A stretch of DNA of 64,000 nt from Macrostomum lignano (taxonomy: Eukaryota): NCBI GenBank assembly GCA_002269645.1, contig NIVC01000479.1, forward strand, positions 260,795-324,794, written 5' to 3'. The notes under the pieces are model-generated. The model saw only the letters and a list, made by a program, of their open reading frames with translations, was not told the DNA's origin and did no database searches. This document shows positions 1 to 63,449 of this stretch, in pieces. A program made the translations under genes and the position numbers. The number at the start of each line of letters is the position of its first letter. Positions within the stretch are counted from its first letter, which is position 1.

Positions 1-432
1 GTAGGGTTAGTCTTGAAGCGTGTGTACATTCAAAAGGGGTAAGGTTAGTCTTGAAGCGTGTGTTCATTCAAGAGGGGGTAGGTTTAGTTTTGAAGCGTGT
101 GTACATTCAAGAGGGGGTAGGTTTAGTTTTGAAGCGTGTGTACATTCAAGAGGGGTACGGTTAGTCTTGAAGCGTGTGTACATTCAAGAGGGGTAGGGTT
201 AGTTTTGAAGCGTGTGTACATTCAAGAGGGGATAGGGTTAGTTTTGAAGCGTGTGTACATTCAAGAGGGGTAGGGTTAGTCTTGAAGCGTGTGTACATTC
301 AAAAGGGGGTAGGTTTAGTTTTGAAGCGTGTGTACAATCAAGAGGGGGTAGGGTTAGTTTTGAAGCGTGTGTACGTTCAAGAGGGGCAGGGGTTAATCAC
401 GAAGCGTGTGTAGGGGTAGGGGTTAGTCTTTT
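1..432. repeat. Minisatellite, about 39-bp unit (GTAGGGTTAGTYTTGAAGCGTGTGTACATTCAAGAGGGG)
   Basis: Direct tandem copies. Confidence 0.9.
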
Positions 433-620
433 GAAGTCTTGGTGAGGTCGGCCTATTCAAGACGGTTTATGATCTTAAAGCGTAATTTAGTCTGTACGTA
501 CAATAACTTAGGTTGTAAATTCATACATTCACGGCTAGCACAGTCCTCAACTGTGCGTACTTTCAATAAGGGTATAGCGTGTATCGAACTAGAAGATATA
601 AATCTATGAGACGTACACAC

Positions 621-9632: not shown

Positions 9633-11600
9633 AGGACTACAGAGGGGGCGCCATCTACAGAGGGGCGCCAGCTACAGAGGGGGCGCCATCTACAGAGGGG
9701 CGCCAGCTACAGAGGGGGCGCCATCTACAGAGGGGCGCCAGCTACAGAGGGGGCGCCATCTACAGAGGGGCGCCAGCTACAGAGGGGGCGCCAGCTACAG
9801 AGGGGCGCCAGCTACAGAGGGGGCGCCATCTACAGAGGGGCGCCAGCTACAGAGGGGGCGCCATCTACAGAGGGGTGCCAGCTACAGAGGGGGCGCCATC
9901 TACAGAGGGGCGCCAGCTACAGAGGGGCGCCAGCTACAGAGGGGCGCCAGCTACAGAGGGGCGCCAGCTACAGAGGGGCGCCAGCTACAGAGGGGCGCCA
10001 GCTACAGAGGGGGCGCCATCTACAGAGGGGGCGCCAGCTACAGAGGGGCGCCAGCTACAGAGGGGCGCCAGCTACAGAGGGGCGCCAGCTACAGAGGGGC
10101 GCCAGCTACAGAGGGGCGCCAGCTACAGAGGGGCGCCAGCTACAGAGGGGCGCCAGCTACAGAGGGGCGCCATCTACAGAGGGGCGCCAGCTACAGAGGG
10201 GCGCCAGCTACAGAGGGGGCGCCATCTACAGAGGGGCGCCAGCTACAGAGGGGCGCCAGCTACAGAGGGGCGCCAGCTACAGAGGGGGCGCCAGCTACAG
10301 AGGGGCGCCAGCTACAGAGGGGCGCCAGCTACAGAGGGGGCGCCATCTACAGAGGGGTGCCAGCTACAGAGGGGGCGCCATCTACAGAGGGGCGCCAGCT
10401 ACAGAGGGGCGCCAGCTACAGAGGGGGCGCCAGCTACAGAGGGGCGCCAGCTACAGAGGGGCGCCAGCTACAGAGGGGCGCCAGCTACAGAGGGGGCGCC
10501 ATCTACAGAGGGGGCGCCAGCTACAGAGGGGCGCCAGCTACAGAGGGGCGCCAGCTACAGAGGGGCGCCAGCTACAGAGGGGCGCCAGCTACAGAGGGGC
10601 GCCAGCTACAGAGGGGCGCCAGCTACAGAGGGGCGCCAGCTACAGAGGGGGCGCCATCTACAGAGGGGCGCCAGCTACAGAGGGGCGCCAGCTACAGAGG
10701 GGGCGCCATCTACAGAGGGGCGCCAGCTACAGAGGGGCGCCAGCTACAGAGGGGCGCCAGCTACAGAGGGGGCGCCAGCTACAGAGGGGCGCCAGCTACA
10801 GAGGGGCGCCAGCTACAGAGGGGCGCCAGCTACAGAGGGGGCGCCATCTACAGAGGGGCGCCAGCTACAGAGGGGGCGCCATCTACGGAAGGGCGCCAGC
10901 TAGAGGGAAAGCTCCAGCTACAGAGGGGGCGCCATCTACAGAGGGGCGCCAGCTACAGAGGGGGCGCCAGCTACAGAGGGGGCGCCATCTACAGAGGGGC
11001 GCCAGCTACAGAGGGGCGCCATCTACAGATAGGCGCCAGCTACAGAGGGGCGCCAGCTACAGAGGGGCGCCATCTACAGATAGGCGCCAGCTACAGAGGG
11101 GCGCCAGCTACAGAGGGGCGCCAGCTACAGAGGGGCGCCAGCTACAGAGGGGGCGCCATCTACAGAGGGGCGCCAGCTACAGAGGGGGCGCCATCTACGG
11201 AAGGGCGCCAGCTAGAGGGAAAGCTCCAGCTACAGAGGGGGCGCCATCTACGGAAGGGCGCCAGCTAGAGGGAAAGCTCCAGCTACAGAGGGGGCGCCAT
11301 CTACAGAGGGGCGCCAGCTACAGAGGGGGCGCCATCTACAGAGGGGCGCCAGCTACAGAGGGGGCGCCAGCTACAGAGGGGGCGCCATCTACAGAGGGGC
11401 GCCAGCTACAGAGGGGCGCCATCTACAGATAGGCGCCAGCTACAGAGGGGCGCCAGCTACAGAGGGGCGCCATCTACAGATAGGCGCCAGCTACAGAGGG
11501 GCGCCAGCTACAGAGGGGCGCCAGCTACAGAGGGGCGCCAGCTACAGAGGGGCGCCAGCTACAGAGGGGCGCCAACTACAGAGGGGCGCCAGCTACAGAG
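9633..11600. repeat. GC-rich 17/18-bp composite minisatellite (CTACAGAGGGG(G)CGCCA(G/T)), about 2 kb
   Basis: Tandem copies; source of the spurious 342-609 aa ORFs. Confidence 0.95.
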
Positions 11601-28164: not shown

Positions 28165-29170
28165 TTTGGCTGGCATAGCAACTGAGGATCTGGGAGGCTG
28201 ACATAGCAACTGAGGATCTGGGAGGCTGGCATAGCAACTGAGGATCTGGGAGGCTGGCATAGCAACTGAGGATCTGGGAGGCTGGCATAGCAACTGAGGA
28301 TCTGGGAGGCTGGCCCAGAAACTGAGGATCTGGGAGGCTGGCCCAGCAACTGAGGATCTGGGAGGCTGGCATAGCAACTGAGGATCTGGGAGGCTGGCAT
28401 AGCAACTGAGGATCTGGGAGGCTGGCATAGCAACTGAGGATCTGGGAGGCTGGCCCAGAAACTGAGGATCTGGGAGGCTGGCCCAGCAACTGAGGATCTG
28501 GGAGGCTGGCCCAGAAACTGAGGATCTGGGAGGCTGGCCCAGAAACTGAGGATCTGGGAGGCTGGCCCAGAAACTGAGGATCTGGGAGGCTGGTCCAGCA
28601 ACTGAGGATCTGGGAAGCTGGAAAAGCAACTGAGGATCTGGGAGGCTGGTCCAGCAACTGAGGATCTGGGAAGCTGGAAAAGCAACTGAGGATCTGGGAG
28701 GCTGGCCCAGCAACTGAGGATCTGGGAAGCTGGAAAAGCAACTGAGGATCTGGGAGGCTGGTCCAGCAACTGAGGATCTGGGAAGCTGGAAAAGCAACTG
28801 AGGATCTGGGAGGCTGGCCCAGCAACTGAGGATCTGGGAAGCTGGTCCAGAAACTGAGGATCTGGGAAGCTGGAAAAGCAACTGAGGATCTGGGAGGCTG
28901 GCCCAGCAACTGAGGATCTGGGACTCTGGCCCAGCAACTGAGGGTCTGGGAAGCTGGTCCAGCAACTGAGGATCTGGGAAGCTGGAAAAGCAACTGAGGA
29001 TCTGGGAGGCTGGCCCAGCAACTGAGGATCTGGGACTCTGGCCCAGCAACTGAGGGTCTGGGAAGCTGGTCCAGCAACTGAGGATCTGGGACTGGGAGGC
29101 TGGCAAAGCAACTGAGGATCTGGGACTGGGAGGCTGGCAAAGCAACTGAGGGTCTGGAAGGCTGGCCCAG
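28165..29170. repeat. 28-bp minisatellite (GCAACTGAGGATCTGGGAGGCTGGCATA and variants)
   Basis: Tandem copies; source of the spurious 320-351 aa ORFs. Confidence 0.95.
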
Positions 29171-29348: not shown

Positions 29349-30119
29349 TCAGTCATCCGCCGCTGACGGTTTCGGCAGGGTGCTGTGGTGCCGATGCGAC
29401 TTCAGGCCGCTTAGAGATGTCGATAAAGCTTCCTCATTGTCATCGACATCGTCGGCTGCTGCTCCGGCGGTGGCGGCGGCGCCGGTTGAAGCTCCGGCGC
29501 TCTCAGAGACTGCCCGACTTGGCTGGCGACTGTGCCGAATCTGCTGGTGGGGCTGCTGTTGCCTGCCAGCTGCTGCAGAGAACTTGCCAGCAGAAGCATC
29601 CGGTGCAGTGCTGATGCTGGTACGCCGTGACAGCAGCAGAGAATGCAAGCCCAGCGCCAGGAATATGAACAACAGTACACCATCCACGGCGTACACTACA
29701 GCAATCTGTGTCAGATAAGACGGCATGTTGTACACCTGCAGAGTAGTGCTAGCGTTGTACCGCCGATCAGGCACTGAGCAGACATAATCTCCTGAGTCCT
29801 CAACAGCCAGGTGAATAGCCGACATGGTGCCATTCACTGCACTGATATTAGCATGGGACCAGGCCCAATTATCAATCTGGCTGCCATTGGGAAAGTACCA
29901 GGCCAGCTCAGCAACGGAGTAATTAGTGGCCAGTTCCGGTGACAGATGACAGCTAACTGTGGTGTTGCTACCCACTAATAGGGACTGCTGGTACGGTTCG
30001 GCAGCCAGAGGCGGAGTCTCTTCATCTGGCTCGCTGGCAACTGTCTGCTGAGGCGTTGAAAATAGCAGCAACAGGAAAAGCAGGAACACTGAATTGCTTT
30101 GGAGCATCGTTGTGGACAT
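29349..30119 (-). CDS. Single-Ig-domain type I membrane protein 1 (256 aa), intronless CDS
   Basis: Signal peptide VFLLFLLLLFSTP; Ig motifs VSCHL, LAWYFPNG, EDSGDYVC; TM segment IAVVYAVDGVLLFIFLALGL; low-complexity cytoplasmic tail. Confidence 0.85.
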   Translation of the reverse strand: MSTTMLQSNSVFLLFLLLLFSTPQQTVASEPDEETPPLAAEPYQQSLLVGSNTTVSCHLSPELATNYSVAELAWYFPNGSQIDNWAWSHANISAVNGTMSAIHLAVEDSGDYVCSVPDRRYNASTTLQVYNMPSYLTQIAVVYAVDGVLLFIFLALGLHSLLLSRRTSISTAPDASAGKFSAAAGRQQQPHQQIRHSRQPSRAVSESAGASTGAAATAGAAADDVDDNEEALSTSLSGLKSHRHHSTLPKPSAADD

Positions 30120-30155: not shown

Positions 30156-30890
30156 ATGACACAATCTACCATTGTCTAAATCTAATAGCATGATACACAA
30201 TCTATCATTGTGCAAACCCAATAGCACGATACACAATCTATCATTGTGCAAACCAAATAGCATGATACACAATCTATCATTGTGCAAACCCAATAGCATG
30301 ATACAAAATCTACCATTGTGCAAACCAAATAGCATGATACACAATCTACCATTGTGCAAACCAAATAGCATGATACACAATCTACCATTGTGCAAACCAA
30401 ATAGCATGATACACAATCTACCATTGTGCAAACCAAATAGCATGATACACAATCTACCATTGTGCAAACCAAATAGCATGATACACAATCTACCATTGTG
30501 CAAACCAAATAGCATGATACACAATCTACCATTGTGCAAACCAAATAGCATGATACACAATCTACCATTGTGCAAACCAAATAGCATGATACACAATCTA
30601 CCATTGTGCAAACCCAATAGCATGATACACAATCTACCATTGTCTAAATTCAATAGCATGATACACAATCTACCATTGTGCAAACCAAATAGCATGATAC
30701 ACAATCTACCATTGTGCAAACCCAATAGCATGATACACAATCTACCATTGTGCAAACCCAATAGCATGATACACAATCTACCATTGTGCAAACCCAATAG
30801 CATGATACACAATCTACCATTGTCTAAATTCAATAGCATGATTCACAATCTACCATTGTGCAAACCAAATAGCATGATACACAATCTACC
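30156..30890. repeat. 33-bp minisatellite (ATGATACACAATCTACCATTGTGCAAACCAAAT-type)
   Basis: About 22 tandem copies. Confidence 0.95.
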
Positions 30891-31639
30891 AGTGCCAGAC
30901 ATAAACAGTAGCAAGTAACATAAACTAAAAGCAAGTCTTCAGCTTTTTTTTTTCTTCCACTAACGATTAAATTGCCTACTTTTAGGCCCAATTATAATAT
31001 TAGCATGCTTACATTTTTACCCACTCGAACAGGAATTTAAGTAAAACTAGGCTCTGTTAATCTATCAATTTTACGCTTAGCGAGGGTTGGCGAGAGTGTC
31101 CTCAATTAATGATAAGCGCCTGCCTCGGCTATTATAGGAATTTTAAGCTGAACAGATGCGACTGAAAGACAGTCCTTTTTGGAGGAGATGAATGAAACAA
31201 TCTAAACGCTTTTTATTTTTTTACAGAGTAGAACCCTTCTTGCCTTTCACTTTCTCTCTCTCGTCTAAACGCTTTGATATTGAAGGCTGCACAAAAATAT
31301 ATCTGGGGATAGTTGGTAATTTCCTATTCAAATAAATACATCTACAAAGTACAAACTTAAACATGAAACTATATTCCTGGGGACACGCAGAAATTTTATA
31401 CGATGAGAAGTTTCTGTAGGCTGCTGAACAACAAGCCTGTCATCATTAAATATAAAATATTAATTTTGTGCTAGCTATTAGATTTCATAGACGAAAGGGT
31501 ATACTGAAGAGGTTTGAGGAGATATTGAAGACATGAGGTTATAGAGTGTGAGAAAAGGTCATTAGAGTGTGAGGATAGATAAAGGCCTGTGAGAGATCAG
31601 GAGAGAAAATATCAGTGTCGTCCCAGCTTAGTGGGTGTG

Positions 31640-36604: not shown

Positions 36605-37114
36605 TCAAACTGCGCGACTAGATTGTCTAAAAGAGCCCAACAGAGACATAACGCATAACACGCCAGTCACAATCGTTAGAGCACCATCAATAGAGTACAC
36701 AATCGTTAAAACTGACGCATAAGACGGCATTTTATAAATGACAACATTAACCGAAGCGGTCATGTTACACGAATTCAAACGGCACTGATAGTAACCACTG
36801 TCACCTTCCGTAGCCTTTAAACAGTTTAATTTACCATCGTTTGATTGAAACCGGCCTCTCAAAGACAAGCCAGTAATCATAGTGCCATTAGGCGAGTACC
36901 ATTCCAACGAGCTACTATTAAACTTGCTGACGCAATCGCCCACAGCAACAGGCTTTGGCAAACGACAAGAGATTGTGAAGCTGCGACCAATTTCGGCTGA
37001 GGTTTGATTGAGCGATAAAACTAAATGACTGGCAGCATGAACTGTCTGCTGGCCGAATACTAATATCGACAGAATTAGTGCACTCGCAATCGTTTTGTAA
37101 GCTGTGTAAGTCAT
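36605..37114 (-). CDS. Single-Ig-domain type I membrane protein 2 (169 aa), paralog of the gene at 29349
   Basis: Signal peptide IASALILSILVFG; Ig motifs TISCRL, LEWYSPNG, GDSGYYQC; YKMPSY then TM segment VLTIVYSIDGALTIVTGVLCV; very short tail. Confidence 0.85.
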   Translation of the reverse strand: MTYTAYKTIASALILSILVFGQQTVHAASHLVLSLNQTSAEIGRSFTISCRLPKPVAVGDCVSKFNSSSLEWYSPNGTMITGLSLRGRFQSNDGKLNCLKATEGDSGYYQCRLNSCNMTASVNVVIYKMPSYASVLTIVYSIDGALTIVTGVLCVMSLLGSFRQSSRAV

Positions 37115-39053: not shown

Positions 39054-39392
39054 TTAGTCCAATCCCTTCAGCAGCGAGCCGATGTCAAGATTGTTGATGT
39101 CGTGGTGACGATCCATGGCCTGACCGGCTGGGCGGTAGCCAAGGCGACCCTGCTGCTGTCGCAGCTCCCGCTCTCGCTCCTGACGCTGCATGGACTCCAT
39201 GAACTGCTCCCACATAGTCTCAAACTGCTCATCGTTCATCACGGGTCCGGAGGAGCTGCCGCTGGCGCTGGCGCTGCTGCTGGCGCCGCTGCGATGACCG
39301 TTGCTGCCAGATACAACGGCGGTAGCTGGCAGAGCAGTAACAGCAGCAGCCAGGGAAATAGCAACCAACAGATAGAAGGTAAAACACTTCAT
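39054..39392 (-). CDS. Small secreted protein or possible peptide precursor (112 aa), family unknown
   Basis: Clear signal peptide MKCFTFYLLVAISLAAAVTA, Ser/Gly linker, Q/E/R-rich helix, no Cys after the signal. A TATA-like sequence (TATAAAA on minus) lies near 39498-39504. Confidence 0.7.
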   Translation of the reverse strand: MKCFTFYLLVAISLAAAVTALPATAVVSGSNGHRSGASSSASASGSSSGPVMNDEQFETMWEQFMESMQRQERERELRQQQGRLGYRPAGQAMDRHHDINNLDIGSLLKGLD

Positions 39393-47250: not shown

Positions 47251-48429
47251 GTATTTCAAAAGTTCGTAGAAAAGCCGTCTTTGCATAAAGCTATGGCCTT
47301 GAAACTTTTTACAAATACTATTTCATAAATCTATAGCCTGCAGCTAAATTTTCAGCAAAATTGATTGAAATGGCCACCAGAAATCTGCGATCAAACTCTG
47401 AACCCCCACTGCATTTCCTGCGTTCTCCAAGGAGCAGTCAAGAGCCATAATGCTGTTCCTGTTTCGTCGAGGCTCTAGCGCAAATGAAGCTGCTGCTGAG
47501 ATGAAGACTGTACTGCAAGATGAAGCTCCATCCCTCAGCACTGTGAACAAGTGGTTTGGTCGCTTTATAGAGCCGGCCATTTCAATCTGGCTGATGAGCC
47601 AGCCAAGAGAAGGTTGTCCAAGAACATCAACAGACTCATTGAATGTGGCTGCTTTGAACGAGGATGCAAGACTGACGATTGAGAGGATGGAGGAGAGTCT
47701 TGGCATTGATGCCAAATCGATTTGGAGCCGGATCTTGCACGAAGATCTTGGTGTCACCAAGAAAGCTGCCAAATGGGTGCCACGAATCCTCTCGCCTGAG
47801 CGGAAGCAGCGGAGAATTGATTTCTGCAGAAATTTCCTGGATCAGTTCAAAGATGAAGCATCTGCGAACTTCCAGAACATAGTCACAGGTGATGAAGCCT
47901 GGTTCCATCAGTACGACCCGCCAACTAAATCACAGTCGATGGTTTGGTCACTCAAAGGAGCCCCACCTCCCAAAAAGGCAAAGCGGGTGAGGTCAGCTGG
48001 GAAAATCATGTTCGCAATTTTCTTCTCGCCCAGAGGCATCGTGGGCTCAGTGCCTGTTGAGCAAGGCCGCACTGTGACCTCTGATTGGTACGTGACCATC
48101 TGCTTGCCCACTGTGTTCAATTCCATCGCAACTGGCCAGCAGCGCAGGCTGGAAAATTTCAGAAAATCAAGCAGAGCTGCTGCGTGGAAAGTTGTTTGAG
48201 ACTCATGATGAGCTGATTTCTGCTGTGAGTGAGCAGCTCAACTCCATTGAAAAAGCTGATTTTAGAGGTTGCTTTGATAGCTGGCTGCAGCGCATGCGAA
48301 CGTGCATAGAAATCGGTGGCGATTACGTTGAGAGATCAGATTGAGATGCTGATTAATGTGTCACAACCCGCTTTTTGATATCTGCTTGCTTTCTGTCATT
48401 TTCTACGAACTTTTGAAATGCCCCTCGTA
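47251..48429 (+). mobile_element. Mariner element, defective transposase (ORF 47450-48199 plus C-terminal piece in another frame)
   Basis: TIR ATTTCAAAAGTTCGTAGAAAA (left copy 5'-truncated; right copy ends ...CCCCTCG-TA). Motifs KWVPRIL, IVTGDEAWFHQYDP and terminal GGDYVE. The HDNA/YSPDL catalytic segment is deleted. Confidence 0.9.
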
Positions 48430-49263
48430 ATTGTAGAGCTTGTTCCTATCGGGGATGAAGAGCTGTCTCGAGCCCTCTCTCTTGCCAACGACTGAGGGGC
48501 AGACAAAACCCCACTATAACAGTGGCAATTTGGGGCGGAGCAGCTCAGCAACGAACACGTCTTGACTTTCACGCTCTTGTGGTTTGTAATTTTTGTCTCA
48601 TGGCCCGGGGACTTCCCTGAGGTTCATAATTGCACAAGGGCCAGCCCTCAAAGGCACAGAAAGTGTACATATCAGACTACTTTGCGAAAGTAAGCGCCGC
48701 TGTATACACTCTATATGTGAGCCGTGTGCATGAGTCATTCAGAAGATGAAAGAAGTTGTTCAGCCCGAGGGATGCTGCATTTTCGAATTTGCTGTGCTCG
48801 AATTTGTGTTACTCTACCAATAACGCATTTTGATATTTAGCCATAAATTTTTAGGAATCAAATATATTGGCATAATTTTAAAAGCACGAGAAATTAGAAA
48901 ATTTGATCTATTCTTAGATGCAATAAAAATAAGTTCTAGACACGATTTCAAAATACACTGTTTGGACGTATTTTGGGCAGCACTCGTAATAAGACAAAGA
49001 CATAACTATTACAAAGAGAACTTTCAAACCAAAACTTGATTTATTGGATTTAGTTTATTGTTCTCTCAGTCCAGTGGAACATGCAGCTAACCGGAGATTT
49101 CAGGATCGATTCGTTCAGTCCAAAAAAATCAAAAGACAGACAGGTTAAACTTCATTAAATCAAAACGCAATTTCTTGCTTGTAGTTATTAAAGTGTGTTA
49201 GATTTCACTGCGATTGCCCAATCTGTCGCTATCCTCGATCTCTCGCTCTCTCTATTCGCGGCT

Positions 49264-49626
49264 TTAAGTTGACCAGGTGCAGAACTTACTCAGACACGGG
49301 GTGACGCTCGGCTTGGAGCGACGCTCCACAATCGGACCTGGCGGTGTTGGTGCCATTGGAAAACCAGCTGGATTCTCGGCGGCGTTCCAGGGACGATTTT
49401 TAGATGGATCGAAGTGCTCCTCGAACTGCCTCTGCTGCTGCTGCTCACGCTGGAGCATCTTCTCCTCGATGAGCAGTCGACGCATCAGCTGAACGAGCTC
49501 TGCTTGGTCGTCGGTCTCGAAAATGTGTCGGTTCGATGGCGACTTGAAAGGCCGAGCGTTCACGGCTTGATAACAGATGGACGACAGGAGAACGAGCAGG
49601 ACAATGGGACCAGCTGCTGCTCTCAT
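49264..49626 (-). CDS. Prepropeptide copy 1 (120 aa), C-terminal cyclic peptide SKPSVTPCLSKFCTWST
   Basis: Signal peptide GPIVLLVLLSSICYQAVNA, propeptide, dibasic ERR site, then a C-x4-C ring. Conserved in three copies. Confidence 0.85.
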   Translation of the reverse strand: MRAAAGPIVLLVLLSSICYQAVNARPFKSPSNRHIFETDDQAELVQLMRRLLIEEKMLQREQQQQRQFEEHFDPSKNRPWNAAENPAGFPMAPTPPGPIVERRSKPSVTPCLSKFCTWST

Positions 49627-49800
49627 GGTGACCAGAGTCTGAAACAGGTGAAACGTACCTGTAAAATGTCACGGCAAACCCATACGGCTACTGGCAGTTG
49701 CAGTAATAACGGTTCGTAACTTACCGATTGGGTTTCTTTAAGAAGTGCGTGTTAATCAGAAAATTGTGTAGGCGAATTTGTTAAGCGCCTAAAACAACTG

Positions 49801-49850
49801 TATTTATAGACAATAAGCTTAGCCAATGGCGCCAGAGCGCGTTGGTGGGC
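49801..49850 (-). promoter_or_regulatory. Core promoter of peptide copy 1: TATA box plus inverted CCAAT
   Basis: TATAAATA on minus at 49801-49808; CCAAT at 49823-49827; a GCGCCAGAGCGCGTTGGTGG block follows. All are conserved in the three copies. A 5' UTR intron is predicted at about 49639-49724. Confidence 0.6.
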
Positions 49851-51436
49851 CGGCGGCAAGTAGGCGTTGTCCTGATAAATTATTTTTTAGCCACAGACTT
49901 TCCACTTTTTTATTAACTGATGGACAGATAATTGAAAATTTTCAACAGCTTTTACACTGATTATCGAGCCATTTCATTTTTTCGTTATTTAATTTTTTAT
50001 CAGCTTGAAAAAAACTAAGAGAAAGCATCAAATCGACGCATCTGTCGCTCTGAACTTTGTAAGTCAATTAAGTCAATTGATGGTCGTCATTTTTTAATTT
50101 ACCAATATAGTAAAATTGGGAAAATTTAAAATTAAATTGGTAAAATAGTAAAATTTAAATAAAATGTTTTTTTCCAATTACATAATGCGCAATGGAATTA
50201 TCGTCATTATTATTAGTTAGTTACCAATTTTTATCGCTTCTATGTGGTTTTTCAAGTCCATACCAAGACGACAACCGACTACTCGTAGAGGGGCCAATCA
50301 GATACTGTCGTACACAATTTAAGCGACTGCCTGCGTCGGGTTCCACAAGTGCATCCTGTGACGGAATATGTCGCTGGATTCACACCGTCTTGATAGAATC
50401 GCAAGCGCGCTCGATGGGATTATTCCTTGTAAATCTCTGGAATCTGGACGTTTTGAAGGCCCAATTTTAGATTAGAACGAAGGCAATTCAATTCTCGGCT
50501 CGGCCATGACACACGAGGGAAATTTAATAAGCTATCAAGATTGATATCAGGATGGGAGTACATGCTTGCTGCTTTAAACACCTTTATTCCGCAGAAGCCA
50601 GACTTGGCTTTTTACATGTTCATGGGGACTAACGTATAATCCATTATGCTAAAAATTGTTTGTCGGTAGGTAGGTATCTATCTATCTATGTTTGTGATCG
50701 ATTAGAGAAAAATATAATGCTAAAGTTGGACTGTTAAATAGTATCCATGCCAGGTGTCACCGACGCGATGGGATACTTAAAGGCTGAGCGCCGTGATAAC
50801 TGCTGAATTGGAAAAAAGCGGCGACCCTGGGGCGCGCCTGAGAGCAGAAACATCCCACCGGTGAATTTGTGTTTTCTTGTCTTTGGATGGTTCAAGGCCG
50901 CAATTACTCATACTCATGCATACATGTGCATCATCACCAGAGTGGTTAAAATTATAGTTAATCGATTGTCAGCAAAGCGCTGCATATTCAGGGTGCCAGC
51001 ACATGTACATCTACTATGGCTCGATACGTACAGTCTAAATGCATTGAAATGCAAAATTCTGAGCTACATCTAGTCTATACGATAGAGAATTAAGTCAAAA
51101 AATGAAAAAATATCAAACCACTGTTTGCGATCTCGCTACGAGCGAATTAAGAAGACAATATGCTACCAAGAGTTTTTCTGTCCCAAGATGTAATAAAGGA
51201 TTTATTTGAAGCCATTACCGATAAGATCGATAAAACTTGGCCACAAAAGGCCAAAATAGGGGATTTCTGGAAAGAAAATTTGCACGATTTTTTTATTGAG
51301 CGGGGACATTCGACTCTATAACTTTATGATCAATTAGTTAAAATTAAAAGACAGGTGGGTTCAGCACTAGCTAAGATAAGTTTGTTAGACTTCACTTCGA
51401 GTGCCCGATCTTTCTGAGCTTTCGGAGGCTCCAAGC

Positions 51437-51793
51437 TTAATAGGTGCAAAACTTCAGCAGACACGGGGTGACGCTCGGCTTGGAGCGACGCTCCACAATC
51501 GGGCCTGGCGGTGTTGGTGCCATTGGAAAATCAGCTGGATTCTCGGCGGCGTTCCAGGGACGATTTTTAGATGGATCGAAGTGCTCCTCGAACTGCCTCT
51601 GCTGCTGCTGCTCACGCTGGAGCATCTTCTCCTCGATGAGCAGTCGACGCATCAGCTGAACGAGCTCTGCTTGGTCGTCGGTCTCGAAAATGTATCGGTT
51701 CGATGGCGACTTGAAAGGTCGAGCGTTCACGGCTTGATAACAGATGGCCGACAGGAGAACGAGCAGGACAATGGGACCAGCTGCTGCTCTCAT
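51437..51793 (-). CDS. Prepropeptide copy 2 (118 aa), C-terminal peptide SKPSVTPCLLKFCTY
   Basis: Near-identical intact ORF to copies 1 and 3, with shared upstream elements. Confidence 0.85.
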   Translation of the reverse strand: MRAAAGPIVLLVLLSAICYQAVNARPFKSPSNRYIFETDDQAELVQLMRRLLIEEKMLQREQQQQRQFEEHFDPSKNRPWNAAENPADFPMAPTPPGPIVERRSKPSVTPCLLKFCTY

Positions 51794-51972
51794 GGTGACC
51801 AGAGTCTGAAACAGGTGAAACGTACCGATTCAGAACGACATGAGAAACACATACGGCTACTGGCAGTTGCAGCAGTAACTGTTCGTAACTTACCGATTGG
51901 GTTTTTCAAGAAGGGTGCTAGTCTGGAAATTGGAAATTGTGCTAGCAATTTTGCAAGCTCGTAAAACAGTTG

Positions 51973-52020
51973 TATTTATAGACAATTAGCTTAGCCAATA
52001 GCGCCAGAGCGCGTTGGTGG
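51973..52020 (-). promoter_or_regulatory. Core promoter of peptide copy 2
   Basis: TATAAATA on minus at 51973-51980; CCAAT at 51995-51999; same GC block. Confidence 0.6.
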
Positions 52021-54153
52021 ACTGGCAGGTGGGCGTTTTCCAGAAAAATTATCTTTGTTTGAGATCTAGTCGAATGGTAGCTAATTGATTTATAAGTGCT
52101 TGTTAATTGGATTTTTTAGCGACATGATTTTTCTCATTGCCTACATTTTTATTAGCTTGGAAATGGAAAAATTAAGAGAAAGCATGATATCGATGCATTT
52201 AATTGTAGTTGGTACTACATAAGTCGACGATGCAGTAATTCGATGCTTTTCTGTCTGTCTAGTCCGGTTCATATGAGCTTCAGATGCCTCACTGAAGTTT
52301 CTGTAGGTCCATTTATCTGAATCGCACTGGCCCGAAGAAGGAGAACTGTTGTATTTAAGAATCTGCGCGCCATTCAGCAGAGGCCATTGAGAGGTCGAGT
52401 GTACGTCTGCGCGGGCTTGTCCACAATGTGTGGTCTCTTGACAGTTTTTCTAGGTTGCAGGTACGTGTCGTCTATATCTGTACATGTAAACCGCGCACCG
52501 CGAGCATTTGCAGAGTGGGTAAAATATTTATTTGATCAATCATGAGCGATGTGCTGAACGGTAGATCATCCTGTTGGCGGGCGGTTTTTCAAGGCGTGGT
52601 TTTAGAGTCAGTCTTGTGGTGTCCCTGGCTGTGGACTGACTTGCTGTGGAGGGATATTTTCTGGGAAGTTCAGAGACTCATCGAAGAGGCAATTCCGGCT
52701 AATTTACGGTTGCTCAATTTGGAGCTTGGTGCTTAGCACGACGTGGCACCCCTAAAACCGACATCAGTGTTCTGTACTGTTCTGAGCACCTCCTGGTTGT
52801 CTCGAAAGTCTTGATGACCGATTGGCTAGGACTCAGTGGTAGACATTGGATACGATACGCGGGCCACAAAAAGTACACAAAAATTAAAAATGTCTGTTTC
52901 TCAAAGTCGATGCAAATTTAGGGAGATGACTGGTGCGCTTCTTATCAAGGAAAACCATGCTTCGCGTCTATTTTTAGCCTGCACGTTCGCCTTCAATTGG
53001 CCGACGAGCGGATAGTCATTCGCAGGCTTAAATGCCATATATCCGCAATCACACAGAATACAGGCGACTCGGCGGGCTGCATGCAATGAAAAAATTGGAA
53101 AGAGGGCTTCGGGCCACACAGAAATGGCCTGTGGACCTCAGGTTGGGGACCCCTGCAGGGCTAGGTCCTAGAAGAATTGGCATCGGCAACTCATGCGACA
53201 GTAGGAGGCGACGTTTCCTGGACGCTTGGGGAAGTCGAGTCTGCGATCGATGACTGGGCCGATAGTAAAACAAGTATCAAGTTATGCTTCCCTTAATTAA
53301 TGAAGCCTCATCCGCAAACTGGAGTGGTACTGACACCTTAACTTCTGACATTGTTAGGGGTTAAAATCAAAGCTAAAGTAAAGCTGAAGGTGATCATTCC
53401 GTAAACTGCACTCATTGCGTCTGGTTTTGTCTGTAGTTTTAGATTGCCGGTTGTTTGCTCAGCAACATGCTTTTAAGTCAGACTATTTGAAATAACGATT
53501 AGCGAGAAAGGCCTCTCTTTGTCTAGGCGGTAACTCGAGGTTCGTAATTTTCTAAACAGAAAGCTTTCTGAATGTCAATAGAGCAATAAGAAAGGCAGGA
53601 CATATCGAAAGAGGAACACTGGATCTCTCCTCTATTAAAAGCAATAACAATTTTTGTGCTGAAAAATGAGAACTTCCTATCTTTGTAATGTATTTTTTAC
53701 ATGTCTCCTAAAACCTGTCTCCTAAAATTTTCCAAGAAGCGTATAGTTCCCGTCCTTCTACTTGAGTAGCCTTCGGTACATGAGCCAGCTAGCTATACAT
53801 GCAGGGCTATTTGCAGTGAACCATGCAGTTTGTACAGTGAAGAACTGAGTAAAAAATAATTTAAATCAAACAACTTTTTGCATCTCGCATGCAGTCTCTA
53901 GAATTCAGCGAGAAAATGCATATGAGCTTCAAAGTCTCTGAAGCTGTATTAAATTTATTATTTTAAATCGTCAAACGTAAAACCGATGAAGTGTTGCCGC
54001 GAAAGACATTAAAATATAGGATTTTCGAACAAAAGCTGGCGGAATTTTTTATTTATTGCCCTCATTTGTTTGGGACATTCAGCTAATCGCATAATTTTAG
54101 GATCGATTGATTCAAAGAGAAAAGATCGACGTGAGCTCTCCGCCGATCCAAGT

Positions 54154-54510
54154 TTACCAGGTGCAAAACTTCAGCAGACACGGGGTGACGCTCGGCTTGG
54201 AGCGACGCTCCACAATCGGGCCTGGCGGTGTTGGTGCCATTGGAAAACCAGCTGGATTCTCGGCGGCGTTCCAGGGACGATTTTTAGATGGATCGAAGTG
54301 CTCCTCGAACTGCCTCTGCTGCTGCTGCTCACGCTGGAGCATCTTCTCCTCGATGAGCAGTCGACGCATCAGCTGAACGAGCTCTGCTTGGTCGTCGGTC
54401 TCGAAAATGTGTCGGTTCGATGGCGACTTGAAAGGCCGAGCGTTCACGGCTTGATAACAGATGGCCGACAGGAGAACGAGCAGGACAATGGGACCAGCTG
54501 CTGCTCTCAT
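54154..54510 (-). CDS. Prepropeptide copy 3 (118 aa), C-terminal peptide SKPSVTPCLLKFCTW
   Basis: Near-identical intact ORF. The ATG at 54510 aligns with copies 1 and 2; the ORF track extends it upstream into the 5' UTR intron. Confidence 0.85.
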   Translation of the reverse strand: MRAAAGPIVLLVLLSAICYQAVNARPFKSPSNRHIFETDDQAELVQLMRRLLIEEKMLQREQQQQRQFEEHFDPSKNRPWNAAENPAGFPMAPTPPGPIVERRSKPSVTPCLLKFCTW

Positions 54511-54671
54511 GGTGACCAGAGTCTGAAACAGGTGAAACGTACCTGTAAAATGTAACGGCAAACCCATACGGCTCCTAATAACGGTTCGTAACTTACCGGT
54601 TGGGTTTTTTCAAAAAGCGATGTTTATTTGGATATTGTGTAAGCGAATACTGTCAAGCTTTTAAAAGTGTG

Positions 54672-54726
54672 TATTTATAGACAATTCGAGTAAGCTTAGC
54701 CAATAGCGCCAGAGCGCGTTGGTGGG
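54672..54726 (-). promoter_or_regulatory. Core promoter of peptide copy 3
   Basis: TATAAATA on minus at 54672-54679; CCAAT at 54700-54704; same GC block. Confidence 0.6.
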
Positions 54727-57079: not shown

Positions 57080-58370
57080 AATGAAATAGCAGGTCTATAG
57101 ATCATATAAACTATCAAGTCTATAGATCGTATAGACTACCAAGTCTATAGATCGTATGGACTATCAAAGTCTATAGATCATATAAACTGGACTATCAGGT
57201 ATACTTATCTTATGAACTATCAAGTCTATAGATCATATGGACCATCAAGTCAATATATCATATGGATAATCAATTCTATAGATCATATGGAATATTACGT
57301 CTATAGATCTTATGGACCAGCAAGTCTATAGATCCTATGGATTATCAGGCCTATGGATCTTGTGAACTACTAAGTTTAGAATCATTTGGTCTATCAAGTC
57401 TATAGATCATGTGCAATTCTATAGATCATGCGGACTATCAAGTCTATAGATCATGTGGACTATCAATTCGATAGATCATGTGGACTGTCAATTCGATAGA
57501 TCATGTGGACTGTCAATTCGATAGATCATGTGGACTATCAATTCGATAGATCATGTGGACTGTCAATTCGATAGATCATGTGGACTGTCAATTCGATAGA
57601 TCATGTGGACTATCAATTCTATAGATCATGTGGACTATCAATTCTATAGATCATGTGGACTATCAATTAGATAGATCATGTGGACTGTCAATTCGATAGA
57701 TCATGTGGACTATCAATTCTATAGATCATGTGGACTATCAATTCTATAGATCATGTGGACTGTCAATTCGATAGATCATGTGGACTGTCAATTCGATAGA
57801 TCATGTGGACTATCAATTCGATAGATCATGTGGACTGTCAATTCGATAGATCATGTGGACTATCAATTCGATAGATCATGTGGACTGTCAATTCGATAAA
57901 TCATGTGGACTATTAATTCGATAGATCATGTGGACTATCAATTCTATAGATCATGTGGACTATCAATTCTATAGATCATGTGGACTGTCAATTCGATAGA
58001 TCATGTGGACTGTCAATTCGATAGATCATGTGGACTGTCAATTCGATAGATCATGTGGACTGTCAATTCGATAGATCATGTGGACTATTAATTCGATAGA
58101 TCATGTGGACTATCAATTCTATAGATCATGTGGACTATCAATTCTATAGATCATGTGGACTGTCAATTCGATAGATCATGTGGACTATCAAGTCCATAGA
58201 TCATGTGGACTATCAATTCTATAGATCATGTGGACTATCAAGTCTGTAGATCATGTGGATAATCAATCTATAGATCATGTGGACTGTCAATTCGATAGAT
58301 CATGTGGACTGTCAATTTTATAGATCATGTGGACTGTCAATTCTATAGATCTTATGGACTATCGATTCTA
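57080..58370. repeat. 25-bp minisatellite (GATCATGTGGACTATCAATTCTATA) with degenerate edges
   Basis: Tandem copies. Confidence 0.95.
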
Positions 58371-60947: not shown

Positions 60948-63449
60948 TCAATAATAGGCCTTGTGCGCTTCGGCCAGAGATTTCAGTATGGCACTGTGCG
61001 TTGACGACACGTCGGCTCGATTCCCGACGTCCATCCAGGTGACAAACTCGCCATCTCCAGCCAGTGCAGTCAGCATGGCCTGCGAGTCGAATTTTCTGCT
61101 AAACGCTTCGTGCAAATTTACCAGCTCAGTCTCTAGCCAAGCTGATGGAGCCTGGCTGTCTGGCGATCCTGGAAGGACCGAATGCTTCAGAGCGGCTGCT
61201 TGGATCTCGCTGCGAGCGTTGGCCGAGTCCGCAACCGACTCAACCCGGTCACTTAGCCATGCTTTGAGCTCGTTGGCTAAATTGCAGCAGGTGGCCGAGC
61301 ACCTGTGCGTAATAGGATGACATTTAGGTGATATCAGTTACTGACGTTCCCTGAGTCGCATCCGACAGTGCCACTCAAAATATCGACGTATGAGAATCAT
61401 GCTCGTAGTGTTCTTCAGCTACGGTCCTCAACTCCCCTATCCTATAATAGTGTCCTTCAGCTACGGTCCTCAACTCCCCTATCCTATAATAGTGTTCTTC
61501 AGCTACGGTCCTCAACTCCCCTATCCTATAATAGTGTTCTTCAGCTACGGTCCTCAACTCGCCTATCCATAATAGTGTTCTTCAGCTACGGTCCTCAACT
61601 CCCCTATCCTATAATAGTGTTCTTCAGCTACGGTCCTCAACTCCCCTATCCTATAATAGTGTTCTTCAGCTACGGTCCTCAACTCCCCTATCCTATAATA
61701 GTGTTCTTCAGCTACGGTCCTCAACTCCCCTATCCTATAATAGTGTTCTTCAGCTACGGTCCTCAACTCCCCTATCCTATAATAGTGTTCTTCAGCTACG
61801 GTCCTCAACTCCCCTATCCTATAATAGTGTCCTTCAGCTACGGTCCTCAACTCCCCTATCCTATAATAGTGTCCTTCAGCTACGGTCCTCAACTCCCCTA
61901 TCCTATAATAGTGTCCTTCAGCTACGGTCCTCAACTCCCCTATCCTATAATAGTGTCCTTCAGCTACGGTCCTCAACTCCCCTATCCTATAATAGTGTCC
62001 TTCAGCTACGGTCCTCAACTCCCCTATCCTATAATAGTGTTCTTCAGCTACGGTCCTCAACTCCCCTATCCTATAATAGTATCCTTCAGCTACGGTCCTC
62101 AACTCCCCTATCCTATAATAGTGTTCTTCAGCTACGGTCCTCAACTCCCCTATCCTATAATAGTGTTCTTCAGCTACGGTCCTCAACTCCCCTATCCTAT
62201 AATAGTGTTCTTCAGCTACGGTCCTCAACTCCCCTATCCTATAATAGTGTTCTTCAGCTACGGTCCTCAACTCCCCTATCCTATAATAGTGTTCTTCAGC
62301 TACGGTCCTCAACTCCCCTATCCTATAATAGTGTCCTTCAGCTACGGTCCTCAACTCCCCTATCCTATAATAGTGTCCTTCAGCTACGGTCCTCAACTCC
62401 CCTATCCTATAATAGTGTCCTTCAGCTACGGTCCTCAACTCCCCTATCCTATAATAGTGTTCTTCAGCTACGGTCCTCAACTCCCCTATCCTATAATAGT
62501 GTTATTCAGCTACGGTCCTCAACTCCCCTATCCTATAATAGTGTTCTTCAGCTACGGTCCTCAACTCCCCTATCCTATAATAGTGTCCTTCAGCTACGGT
62601 CCTCAACTCCCCTATCCTATAATAGTGTCCTTCAGCTACGGTCCTCAACTCCCCTATCCTATAATAGTGTCCTTCAGCTACGGTCCTCAACTCCCCTATC
62701 CTATAATAGTGTCCTTCAGCTACGGTCCTCAACTCCCCTATCCTATAATAGTGTCCTTCAGCTACGGTCCTCAACTCCCCTATCCTATAATAGTGTCCTT
62801 CAGCTACGGTCCTCAACTCCCCTATCCTATAATAGTGTCCTTCAGCTACGGTCCTCAACTCCCCTATCCTATAATAGTGTCCTTCAGCTACGGTCCTCAA
62901 CTCCCCTATCCTATAATAGTGTCCTTCAGCTACGGTCCTCAACTCCCCTATCCTATAATAGTGTTCTTCAGCTACGGTCCTCAACTCCCCTATCCTATAG
63001 TGCGCACCTGTGACTGCGGTGCTTCACCAGAAAACTGGGAAACTCCTGGCGATTTGCCCGAACGATGGTGGCAGCCTGCAGAACTGGTCGACCTCCGCGT
63101 TTAACCGCATTTTGCCTGTCGTCCCGCTTCCATCGGGTGACGGCCAGCACAGCGCAGTGGTTGGGGCCCCACAGCGGCAGGCCACCTCTGTCAGGCGCCG
63201 TTGTTGAAGTGCAGCTTTTGTACGGATTTCTCGGAGCCGAGTTCGCCACAGCGTACCTTGAGTAGAGAGTGTGAGGAAATTAACCGTTAAGAGAGCAATA
63301 AATCTGACTAATGATTCTATGGACTAATTGATTGTTTCACCTTCCGCCGTGAGACTTCCTGCTGAACCCGCCAGCCTGATCGAACCCATTGAAGCTGTCC
63401 TCAATGGCGTCTGTCGATTCCGGGTCCGCCCAGCCGCACAGACTCAATG
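60948..63449 (-). CDS. Last three exons of an unidentified protein-coding gene that begins beyond the window end
   Basis: Exons 63341-63449, 63008-63256, 60948-61302 have GT-AG sites and matching phases (2,2). They give about 237 stop-free codons ending ...SLAEAHKAYY-stop. No family recognised. Confidence 0.6.
61405..62998. repeat. Highly homogeneous 42-bp minisatellite (AGTGTYCTTCAGCTACGGTCCTCAACTCCCCTATCCTATAAT), about 38 copies, intronic
   Basis: Near-identical copies with no unique spacers. Confidence 0.95.

Follow-up and report, generated by a model that had tools for sequence, protein, structure and literature searches.

Three tandem genes for candidate cyclic-peptide prepropeptides in the flatworm Macrostomum lignano

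The precursors of urotensin II (UII), somatostatin, allatostatin-C (AstC) and the SSRP-like peptides have in common the layout considered here, which is a single C-terminal cyclic peptide located past a basic site. The vertebrate UII and URP peptides have the ring CFWKYC, and their genes contain several coding introns (one in the pro-region and 2-3 more). The protostome SSRP-like peptides are typified by Aplysia apUII (SGGMSLCLWKVCPAAPWLIS), Conus rolani SSRPL1 and Capitella Ct-SSRPL1 (pQASSGAQICIWKVCPPTPW) (PMC3493602, PMC9048919); they bear a Gly/Ser N-terminal extension and a C-terminal extension with several Pro and a single Trp (PMC9048919). What defines UII, somatostatin-related and SSRP-like peptides alike, without exception, is a WK motif (PMC9048919); the nematode nlp-56 has FK in its place and for that reason is not counted among the members (PMC9048919). 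A phase-0 intron in the pro-region is common to the SSRP, SSRP-like and AstC genes examined (PMC7536072, PMC9048919). In the literature searched we found no report of the SSRP-like family in Platyhelminthes.

The window analyzed here, i.e. the whole stretch of 64,000 nucleotides from Macrostomum lignano (NIVC01000479.1:260795-324794), a flatworm as the original prediction had correctly surmised, contains exactly three copies of the gene under study (tblastn), arranged in tandem on the minus strand (Table 1). As originally predicted, all three open reading frames (ORFs) are intact, encoding proteins of 118-120 aa that are 96-98% identical to each other, with the copy 3 protein being identical to the three-copy consensus. 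Their coding regions are uninterrupted by introns. In copy 1 a TAA>TCA change in the ancestral stop codon has added Ser-Thr to the C-terminus, while the mechanically called ORF of copy 3 extends to an upstream ATG at 54567 (137 aa) that lies within the putative intron. The three genes are not present in the deposited protein set or the transcript-based GenBank annotation, as represented in the searched collections, and the contig collection searched had no record of the exact protein products.

Table 1. Features of the three gene copies, in re-checked coordinates of the window. The masses of the disulfide-bonded peptides are in each case 2 Da under the reduced mass.
Feature	Coordinates	Strand	Details
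Copy 1 CDS	49264..49626	(-)	120 aa, single coding exon; C-terminal end ...CLSKFCTWST (stop)
Copy 1 predicted mature peptide SKPSVTPCLSKFCTWST	49267..49317	(-)	RR 49318-49323; predicted disulfide-bonded [M+H]+ 1869.887
Copy 1 putative 5'UTR intron	49639..49724	(-)	86 nt, GTAAGT...TGTTTCAG; donor and acceptor kept in 3/3 copies
Copy 1 core promoter	49800..49830	(-)	inverted CCAAT box 49818-49830, TATA box CTATAAATAC 49800-49809; putative function
Copy 1 AATAAA poly(A) signals	49040..49059	(-)	at 49054-49059 and 49040-49045
Copy 2 CDS	51437..51793	(-)	118 aa; C-terminal end ...CLLKFCTY (stop)
Copy 2 predicted mature peptide SKPSVTPCLLKFCTY	51440..51484	(-)	RR 51485-51490; predicted disulfide-bonded [M+H]+ 1684.844
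Copy 2 putative 5'UTR intron	51806..51893	(-)	88 nt
Copy 2 core promoter	51972..52002	(-)	inverted CCAAT box 51990-52002, TATA box 51972-51981
Copy 3 CDS	54154..54510	(-)	118 aa; C-terminal end ...CLLKFCTW (stop)
Copy 3 predicted mature peptide SKPSVTPCLLKFCTW	54157..54201	(-)	RR 54202-54207; predicted disulfide-bonded [M+H]+ 1707.860
Copy 3 putative 5'UTR intron	54523..54596	(-)	74 nt; carries a 12-nt deletion not seen in copies 1 and 2
Copy 3 core promoter	54671..54707	(-)	inverted CCAAT box 54695-54707, TATA box 54671-54680

In each precursor a signal peptide leads into a long pro-region that is helical and rich in Gln and Glu, after which come a disordered linker with many Pro, an RR dipeptide and a C-terminal SKPSVTPC-L-(L/S)-K-F-C-T-(W/Y). 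Heuristic analysis predicts the first 24 residues to be the signal peptide, with a hydrophobic core (Kyte-Doolittle values from 2.55, the mean over residues 7-19, to 3.2) and a -3/-1 site at VNA/R that gives the predicted cleavage VNA/RP. The AlphaFold2 model contains one helix at residues 6-24, corresponding to the signal, and another at residues 38-71 (pLDDT about 90), with the remainder being disordered. Its confidence is lowest over residues 100-104, a stretch containing the RR at 102-103; this RR is predicted to be an accessible dibasic site, cleavage at it being itself a prediction. The only cysteines left after removal of the signal are C111 and C116, which probably form a disulfide, and the C111-x4-C116 loop ends 2-4 residues before the stop. 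The precursor has no Gly-basic amidation site, and neither a Pfam search of its full length nor the AlphaFold2 model recovered a known domain or a globular fold. Thus, the signal peptide, helix, RR and two post-signal cysteines support the prepropeptide layout of the original prediction, and the signal-peptide check that it had proposed recovered both the hydrophobic core and the cleavage site. An additional RR at residues 49-50 could be a further cleavage site. Elsewhere in the 128,000 residues of the six-frame translation of the window, the ring pattern C-[ILVM]-x-K-[hydrophobic]-C is matched only once.

Upstream of every copy there is an inverted CCAAT box GC[C/T]ATTGGCTAAG, as read from the sequence, with a TATA box CTATAAATAC following 18-24 nt downstream. 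A conserved donor CGG/GTAAGTTACGAAC is located 84-88 nt past the TATA box, and the putative intron GT...TGTTTCAG of 74-88 nt ends 12 nt upstream of the ATG, such that the TATA/CCAAT promoter and 5' UTR intron that had been proposed as shared features are present, at the sequence level, in all three copies. AATAAA signals are present 96-230 nt past each stop codon. The intron acceptor of copy 1 could alternatively be a trans-splice site. The core promoter of copy 3 falls beyond position 54510, at which the original prediction had ended.

Identity among the copies is mosaic, with 94-98% in the core promoter, 82-97% in the intron and 97-99% in the CDS, as against 59-65% in exon 1 and 50-67% in the 3' flank, and falls directly past the stop codon. 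The pattern is in keeping with selection and gene conversion acting on the promoter and CDS, rather than with a recent neutral duplication. The CDS has a GC content of 56-58% (GC3 63-65%) in comparison to 42% in the spacers, and in this respect resembles an annotated neighbor gene; the mosaic conservation and coding-like composition together suggest that the genes are functional. Synonymous codon differences (1-3 per pair) are as rare as non-synonymous ones (2-5 per pair), and the high CDS identity is hence due in good part to gene conversion; a comparison of three paralogues does not suffice to demonstrate purifying selection on the protein. It is conceivable that the ORFs are non-functional, being silent or decaying duplicates that are kept alike by gene conversion, or that the true product is antisense, in keeping with their absence from the deposited annotation, the uninformative dN/dS signal among the copies and the long antisense ORFs over copies 2 and 3 (187 and 161 aa). 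However, in copy 1 the antisense ORF is interrupted, leaving ORFs of 71 and 101 aa in different frames, whereas all three minus-strand ORFs are intact and share the same architecture. Likewise, the promoter, splice and poly(A) signals all run along the minus strand and are selectively conserved, the conservation stops at the stop codon, the composition is coding-like, and the sole stop-codon change lengthens the ORF by two codons instead of truncating it. Hence, we regard such a lack of function as very improbable.

The predicted mature peptides resemble vertebrate UII and URP in the size of the loop, the position of the Lys and the aromatic residue following it, as well as in their C-terminal position past basic residues and their predicted unamidated state. 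However, in place of the Phe-Trp of the vertebrate ring they have Leu-Leu or Leu-Ser, and their CDS has none of the coding introns of the vertebrate genes. The original prediction had already pointed out the Ser or Leu in place of Trp3, and the ring indeed reads LK in copies 2 and 3 and SK in copy 1. Neither ring variant nor the full precursor matched the Pfam Urotensin_II model (PF02083; hmmscan, E<=10 for the ring variants), with which a vertebrate control, LLARIWKPYKKRETPDCFWKYCV, scored 34.9 bits (cutoff 18.6). The same model also misses Aplysia apUII, whose ring CLWKVC had been correctly cited as a molluscan parallel (PMC3493602). Homology searches, another of the checks proposed earlier, returned no match at E<=1 among 5.8 billion clusters and none at E<=0.001 in an exhaustive phmmer search against 1.84 billion representative proteins. 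A vertebrate-type UII identity is not supported, given the lack of a Pfam match, the missing Trp and the intronless CDS. Thus, of the proposed membership in the UII/somatostatin superfamily, the layout of a cyclic-peptide precursor is retained, while the Pfam and homologue searches, the WK motif and the intron speak against a specific UII assignment; the link to UII is not established, and the sequences point to the spiralian SSRP-like family as a better comparator than vertebrate UII.

Like the protostome SSRP-like precursors, those of M. lignano are short and contain one cyclic peptide near the C-terminus past a basic site, and both come from spiralian hosts. Both peptides begin with a Ser-containing extension and have a four-residue loop in which the first residue is aliphatic, the third is Lys and the fourth is hydrophobic. 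They also have a Trp at the C-terminal end or close to it, which in M. lignano is seen in two of the three copies. The extensions in M. lignano are SKPSVTP on the N-terminal side and, past the ring, T-W in copy 3, T-Y in copy 2 and T-W-S-T in copy 1, with no Pro in these tails. These likenesses raise the possibility, which we consider doubtful, that the three proteins are genuine, though divergent, flatworm members of the family uniting the spiralian SSRP-like peptides (Aplysia "apUII", Capitella SSRPL1) and chordate UII/URP, acting via an SST/UT-related GPCR. Consistent with this, UII, URP and every protostome SSRP-like peptide have a four-residue loop as well, the aliphatic first residue and the Lys match the protostome I/V/L-WK motif, and the N-terminal extension with Ser and Pro lies past the basic site at the C-terminal end of the precursor. 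The Trp, which we count as last in two of the three copies, is also last in Capitella and is near the end in Aplysia and Conus (SGGMSLCLWKVCPAAPWL(I/V)S). Moreover, planarian and schistosome GPCRs are annotated by BLAST as allatostatin/somatostatin-like, with an SSRP-type ligand being unreported there, and SSRP-like introns have been lost in annelids with compact genomes (one intron in Dimorphilus). Against this membership is the absence of the WK motif that every accepted member possesses. The position equivalent to the Trp is the most variable of the ring among the paralogues (L in two, S in one), differing by a three-nucleotide codon change; as it varies among genes that are otherwise 98% identical, it does not form a conserved pharmacophore in these genes. 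Further, no Pro-rich segment separates the Trp from the ring, and the CDS has no counterpart of the two introns that split SSRP-like genes into three exons, one of phase 0 in the pro-region and one of phase 1 where the mature peptide begins. Nor is any similarity between the precursors detectable, in line with the blank Pfam (a model that misses apUII too) and phmmer searches. A chance resemblance of this degree in a C-x4-C peptide, with the many known cyclic families allowed for, has a probability that we roughly estimate at about 0.01-0.05. The AstC, somatostatin and cortistatin precursors have the same generic order of signal peptide, pro-region, basic site and single C-terminal disulfide-looped peptide. 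However, the loop is always of six residues in protostome AstC and of 10-15 in somatostatin and cortistatin, and the M. lignano peptide lacks their Asn or FxP motif and its gene their phase-0 intron.

The above sequence and model-based observations lead us to favor, with somewhat better than even confidence, a cluster specific to the Macrostomum lineage, comprising three tandem, independently promoted genes that each code for a prohormone-type cyclic-peptide prepropeptide. Family membership is nested within this explanation, to which it adds the claim of homology. The predicted signal peptide would direct the precursor into the ER and be removed after VNA, and the C111-C116 disulfide would then close the four-residue loop. 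The amphipathic Gln/Glu-rich helix modeled at residues 38-71 would form the pro-region, perhaps with a role in sorting into secretory granules. A PC2-type convertase might cut past Arg102-Arg103 in the Pro-rich disordered linker; M. lignano has an essential PC2 homologue that is expressed in the nervous system (PMC4490696). Such cleavage would yield an unamidated cyclic peptide of 15-17 residues, SKPSVTP-c[CL(L/S)KFC]-T(W/Y), which, more speculatively, could act as an extracellular signal, most plausibly as a neuropeptide or hormone on a GPCR. The three copies may contribute both dosage and slightly differing ligands, because the second residue of the ring and the C-terminal residue vary among them.

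Alternatively, these genes might encode a non-neuronal secreted effector, such as a prostate or seminal-fluid, other gland or host-defence peptide, with the neuropeptide likeness being merely generic. In M. lignano 76 transcripts are limited to the prostate, and many of these code for proteins with a signal peptide and no homologue or domain (PMC5977470), as is the case with the proteins described here. Orphan status, tandem amplification and TATA-box promoters fit secreted effector families, and reproduction-related genes evolve fast in the genus (PMC7336406). A further fitting feature is a prepro-region that is invariant relative to the mature peptide, in which changes are concentrated: the final 45 nt hold 6 of the 11 variable nucleotides (binomial P about 0.001), but counted by codons the share is 3 of 8 (P about 0.07). 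On the other hand, a short single peptide past a dibasic site together with a helical pro-region is more prohormone-like than the known seminal-fluid and adhesive proteins of M. lignano, and a dibasic site with a short cyclic peptide is not described for the prostate set (Mlig-pro1-76). Further, a charge of +2 over 15 residues is weak for an antimicrobial peptide, and none of these sequences turned up in the searched supplementary files of the seminal-fluid screen. An effector role thus appears unlikely to us, and the prohormone-type cluster is retained as the preferred explanation.

With respect to the narrower claim of homology, we think there is a small chance, slightly below that given to either of the preceding alternatives apart from loss of function, that with these genes the UII/SSRP-like peptides are represented in flatworms for the first time, in a form in which the otherwise universal Trp of the WK pharmacophore was lost and the paralogues are diversifying at exactly that position of the ring. 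If this were true, the ligand-receptor interface would have been re-tuned in Platyhelminthes, and the peptides would become ligand candidates for the orphan "allatostatin/somatostatin-like" GPCRs of flatworms, including those of parasitic species.

The ORF list for the 48.5-55.5 kb region contains three minus-strand ORFs (copies 1-3; see table), the shared 118-codon frame of copy 3 beginning at an ATG within a longer ORF. Their products are 96-98% identical and conform to the consensus MRAAAGPIVLLVLLSAICYQAVNA / RPFKSPSNRHIFETDDQAELVQLMRRLLIEEKMLQREQQQQRQFEEHFDPSKNRPWNAAENPAGFPMAPTPPGPIVE-RR-SKPSVTPCLLKFCTW. Copy 1 departs from it in having Ser instead of Leu as the second ring residue, and in a stop codon change (TAA>TCA) that adds two residues, Ser-Thr; in copy 2 Tyr replaces the final Trp. 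The Leu/Ser difference involves three nucleotide changes (CTG/AGT) and the Trp/Tyr difference two. In the 64-kb window a tblastn search recovered three copies and no more, the rest being at noise level, and six-frame translation of the window yielded a single occurrence of the relaxed ring motif outside the three genes. The original prediction of three ORFs with a common layout agrees with the ORF list, the alignment and the tblastn search, and the triplication is real and beyond chance.

The N-terminus of the precursor combines a positive n-region with a hydrophobic core (maximum Kyte-Doolittle value 3.2), and the best -3/-1 signal cleavage site is VNA/RP, past residue 24. Once the signal peptide is removed C111 and C116 are the only cysteines left; dibasic sites are found at residues 49-50 and 102-103, and the precursor sequence contains no Gly-basic amidation site. 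An AlphaFold2 run without an alignment predicts a helix at residues 6-24 and a confident helix at 38-71 (pLDDT about 90) in an otherwise disordered chain, with the confidence minimum at residues 100-104, at the second RR. This predicted pattern suggests that RR 49-50 is buried in a helix and that RR 102-103 is exposed in a Pro-rich linker. A Pfam search with the whole precursor recovered no domain and only sub-threshold noise, including a Calc_CGRP_IAPP hit over the signal and pro-region (E=0.17) that was rejected as such. As modelled, the architecture is that of a prohormone rather than a folded secreted protein, and the proposed prepropeptide layout with a C-terminal disulfide ring is well supported at the sequence level by the signal peptide, RR 102-103 and C111/C116.

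Gene parts were defined by aligning the three loci, flanks included, and running a coordinate script, and the same succession of elements was recovered in every copy. Identity between the copies is mosaic by segment, falling immediately past the stop codon. The cluster CDSs have a GC content of 56-58% and a GC3 of 63-65%, values resembled by those of the annotated neighbor gene, and the intergenic spacers have a GC content of 42%. Taken together, the shared anatomy, the mosaic identity and the coding-like GC suggest that the cluster comprises real, independently promoted minus-strand genes. Long antisense ORFs over copies 2 and 3 were rejected as the true gene, as their counterpart in copy 1 is broken and the signals are all oppositely oriented. 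Pairs of copies differ by 1-3 synonymous and 2-5 non-synonymous codons, so that the two kinds of change are equally rare, and gene conversion must therefore account for much of the CDS identity; three paralogs do not suffice to demonstrate purifying selection on the protein. That these are silent ORFs homogenized via gene conversion is nevertheless unlikely, given that their signals are conserved and correctly oriented. Six of the 11 variable nucleotides fall within the last 45 nt, the mature-peptide part (binomial P about 0.001), whose share of the variation by codons is 3/8 (P about 0.07). Effector families, too, typically pair an invariant prepro-region with a variable mature peptide, and orphan secreted proteins are expressed by the dozen in prostate cells of M. 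lignano (PMC5977470); a non-neuronal secreted effector is an alternative, albeit one that we regard as rather improbable. The supplementary files searched from that seminal-fluid screen contained no match to the cluster sequences.

Predicted and observed features of the precursor cluster and its surroundings (positions in the window)
Feature	Position or spacing	Details	Identity between copies
Copy 1	49264-49626 (-)	ORF	
Copy 2	51437-51793 (-)	ORF	
Copy 3	54154-54567 (-)	ORF; shared frame starts at ATG 54510	
Core promoter			94-98%
Inverted CCAAT box	minus-strand orientation	GC[C/T]ATTGGCTAAG; predicted from sequence, every copy	
TATA box	18-24 nt downstream of CCAAT box	CTATAAATAC; predicted from sequence, every copy	
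Exon 1			59-65%
Splice donor	84-88 nt past TATA box	CGG/GTAAGTTACGAAC; predicted, conserved in every copy	
Putative intron	stops 12 nt upstream of ATG	74-88 nt, 3' end CACCTGTTTCAG; every copy	82-97%
Exon 2 5'UTR			100%
CDS		without interruption, every copy	97-99%
AATAAA signals	96-230 nt past stop	every copy	
3' flank			50-67%
Start of pro-region	49540-49560 region	FKSPSNR, residues 27-33	
Mariner/Mos1-type transposase remnant	47344-48199	HTH_48 and partial DDE domain; ~1 kb from copy 1	
112-aa ORF	39054-39392 (-)	signal peptide MKCFTFYLLVAISLAAAVTA/LP; Ser-rich stretch; Gln/Glu/Arg-rich segment	
Ig-like ORF	29349-30119 (-)	single exon; annotated; duplicate on NIVC01000840.1	
Ig-like ORF	36605-37114 (-)	single exon; paralog of the preceding	
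TSP1_ADAMTS exons	453-1848 (-)	TSP1_ADAMTS (E=7e-11) and Ig-like domains	
24-nt minisatellite	1048-1297	extends into ORF of the 453-1848 region	
Other minisatellites (examples)	9637-11600, 28168-29170, 30159-30891, 57094-58370, 61406-62999		

Nested within the prohormone reading is the stronger claim of true homology to the SSRP-like family of protostome somatostatin-related peptides. What had been stated of known urotensin II (UII)-like peptides holds: the mature Aplysia apUII' is SGGMSLCLWKVCPAAPWLIS, and its C-C loop has been verified (PMC3493602). Koch et al. 2022 later assigned apUII to the SSRP-like family, reported in Mollusca, Annelida, Brachiopoda, Rotifera and Xenacoelomorpha, whose hallmarks are a WK (Trp-Lys) motif within a four-residue Cys loop, an aliphatic residue preceding WK, a Gly/Ser-rich N-terminal extension and a C-terminal extension with Pro/Trp, encoded by a gene of three exons with phase-0 and phase-1 introns (PMC9048919). 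The same authors did not accept nematode nlp-56, which has FK for WK, as a member, and Platyhelminthes are unmentioned in their study (PMC9048919); a literature search for urotensin and Platyhelminthes yielded just a database paper and a review, the latter without any report of a flatworm peptide. The M. lignano peptides resemble the family in loop size, the Lys, a hydrophobic fourth and an aliphatic first loop residue and the presence of Ser in the N-terminal extension, and two of the three copies have a Trp at or near the C-terminus, as does Capitella pQASSGAQICIWKVCPPTPW. However, they lack the family-defining Trp, the equivalent position differing among the paralogs, as well as a Pro-rich tail, and their genes have no coding intron. 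The Pfam Urotensin_II HMM gave 34.9 bits with a vertebrate control and left both M. lignano variants, as well as Aplysia apUII, undetected. Hence, the UII label originally attached to the cluster is unsupported by every membership test run (Urotensin_II HMM, Trp and intron). An AstC identity is excluded by loop size. The probability that a given C-x4-C peptide would by chance resemble some known cyclic family to this degree is roughly estimated at about 0.01-0.05, which is suggestive, not decisive, and on these sequence features true SSRP-like homology appears doubtful. The start of the pro-region and long-form Aplysia apUII (FKSPMQSR, residues 85-92) have FKSP..R in common; this was judged a chance match, a four-residue identity being expected in ~5-10% of cases for two ~100-aa proteins.

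No homologs were recovered in a word-indexed search of 5.8 billion clusters or by exhaustive phmmer against 1.84 billion representatives, the self-match being absent from both, and the precursor genes are absent from the protein collections searched. Exact look-up in a contig collection recorded none of the three products, nor the 137-aa extended ORF, an absence that is uninformative on expression: all members of the annotated neighbor gene in this collection are from NCBI genomes, so M. lignano RNA-seq assemblies seemingly lie outside it. The deposited annotation, which is transcript-based, appears to lack all three genes. The window had no Rfam match, and the peptide strings none in a full-text literature search.

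The homeologous contig NIVC01000840.1, traced via the neighbor gene, stops about 1.6 kb before the cluster at window-equivalent 47656, within the mariner/Mos1-type element. NIVC01000307.1 is colinear with the window only to window-equivalent 43767 (positions 1-5544 of the stretch examined) and then diverges completely, with no cluster copy in the 10 kb examined; an insertion or subgenome rearrangement upstream of the cluster's expected position may explain this break.

The window, which is the final 64 kb of NIVC01000479.1 (260795-324794; GCA_002269645.1, assembly Mlig_3_7), contains further genes, one of them annotated as 'hypothetical protein BOX15_Mlig005030g1 [Macrostomum lignano]'. The GenBank models corresponding to the 112-aa ORF on homeologous contigs (PAA85707.1 and PAA76140.1; 'hypothetical protein, partial') begin at least 19 codons downstream of its start and therefore miss the signal peptide; judging from its sequence this ORF may encode another small secreted protein or precursor, and it shows no alignment or similarity to the triplicated gene. 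Both Ig-like ORFs combine a signal peptide and a single Ig-like domain (hits to Pfam Ig_3/ig below threshold) with a transmembrane segment preceded by a common V/IY-x-MPSY motif, and the TSP1_ADAMTS exons probably belong to an ADAMTS-like or papilin-like gene. Much of the window is taken up by over 25 separate minisatellite arrays, with periods of 7-98 nt and up to 113 copies, which give rise to many spurious long ORFs; this load fits the ~15% of the M. lignano genome reported as simple and tandem repeats.

If the precursors are processed as their architecture predicts, the signal peptide would be cut after residue 24, the C111-C116 disulfide would form in the ER, and the predicted helical pro-region might aid granule sorting. 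A PC2-type convertase would then cut after RR102-103; M. lignano PC2 is present, expressed in the nervous system and essential (PMC4490696). The product would be an unamidated cyclic peptide of 15-17 residues (predicted [M+H]+ 1707.860, 1684.844 and 1869.887), which might act at a receptor on the cell surface; flatworm GPCRs labeled allatostatin/somatostatin-like by BLAST are possible candidates (PMC3022928).

The cluster is an unannotated, lineage-restricted candidate signaling-peptide locus in a model flatworm, and it points to incomplete coverage of short, multi-copy secreted-peptide genes by the Mlig_3_7 annotation. If expressed and processed as predicted, it would provide a so far unannotated cyclic peptide signal in a model of regeneration and sexual selection. 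The SSRP-like/UII family is unreported for Platyhelminthes in the searchable literature; a relationship to it would close a phylum-level gap in the evolutionary record of somatostatin-related signaling and show that one lineage can dispense with the WK pharmacophore, while the absence of one would point to convergent evolution of a minimal Lys-containing C-x4-C ring. In either case, the cluster offers three natural ring variants that could be synthesized for tests on orphan flatworm GPCRs.
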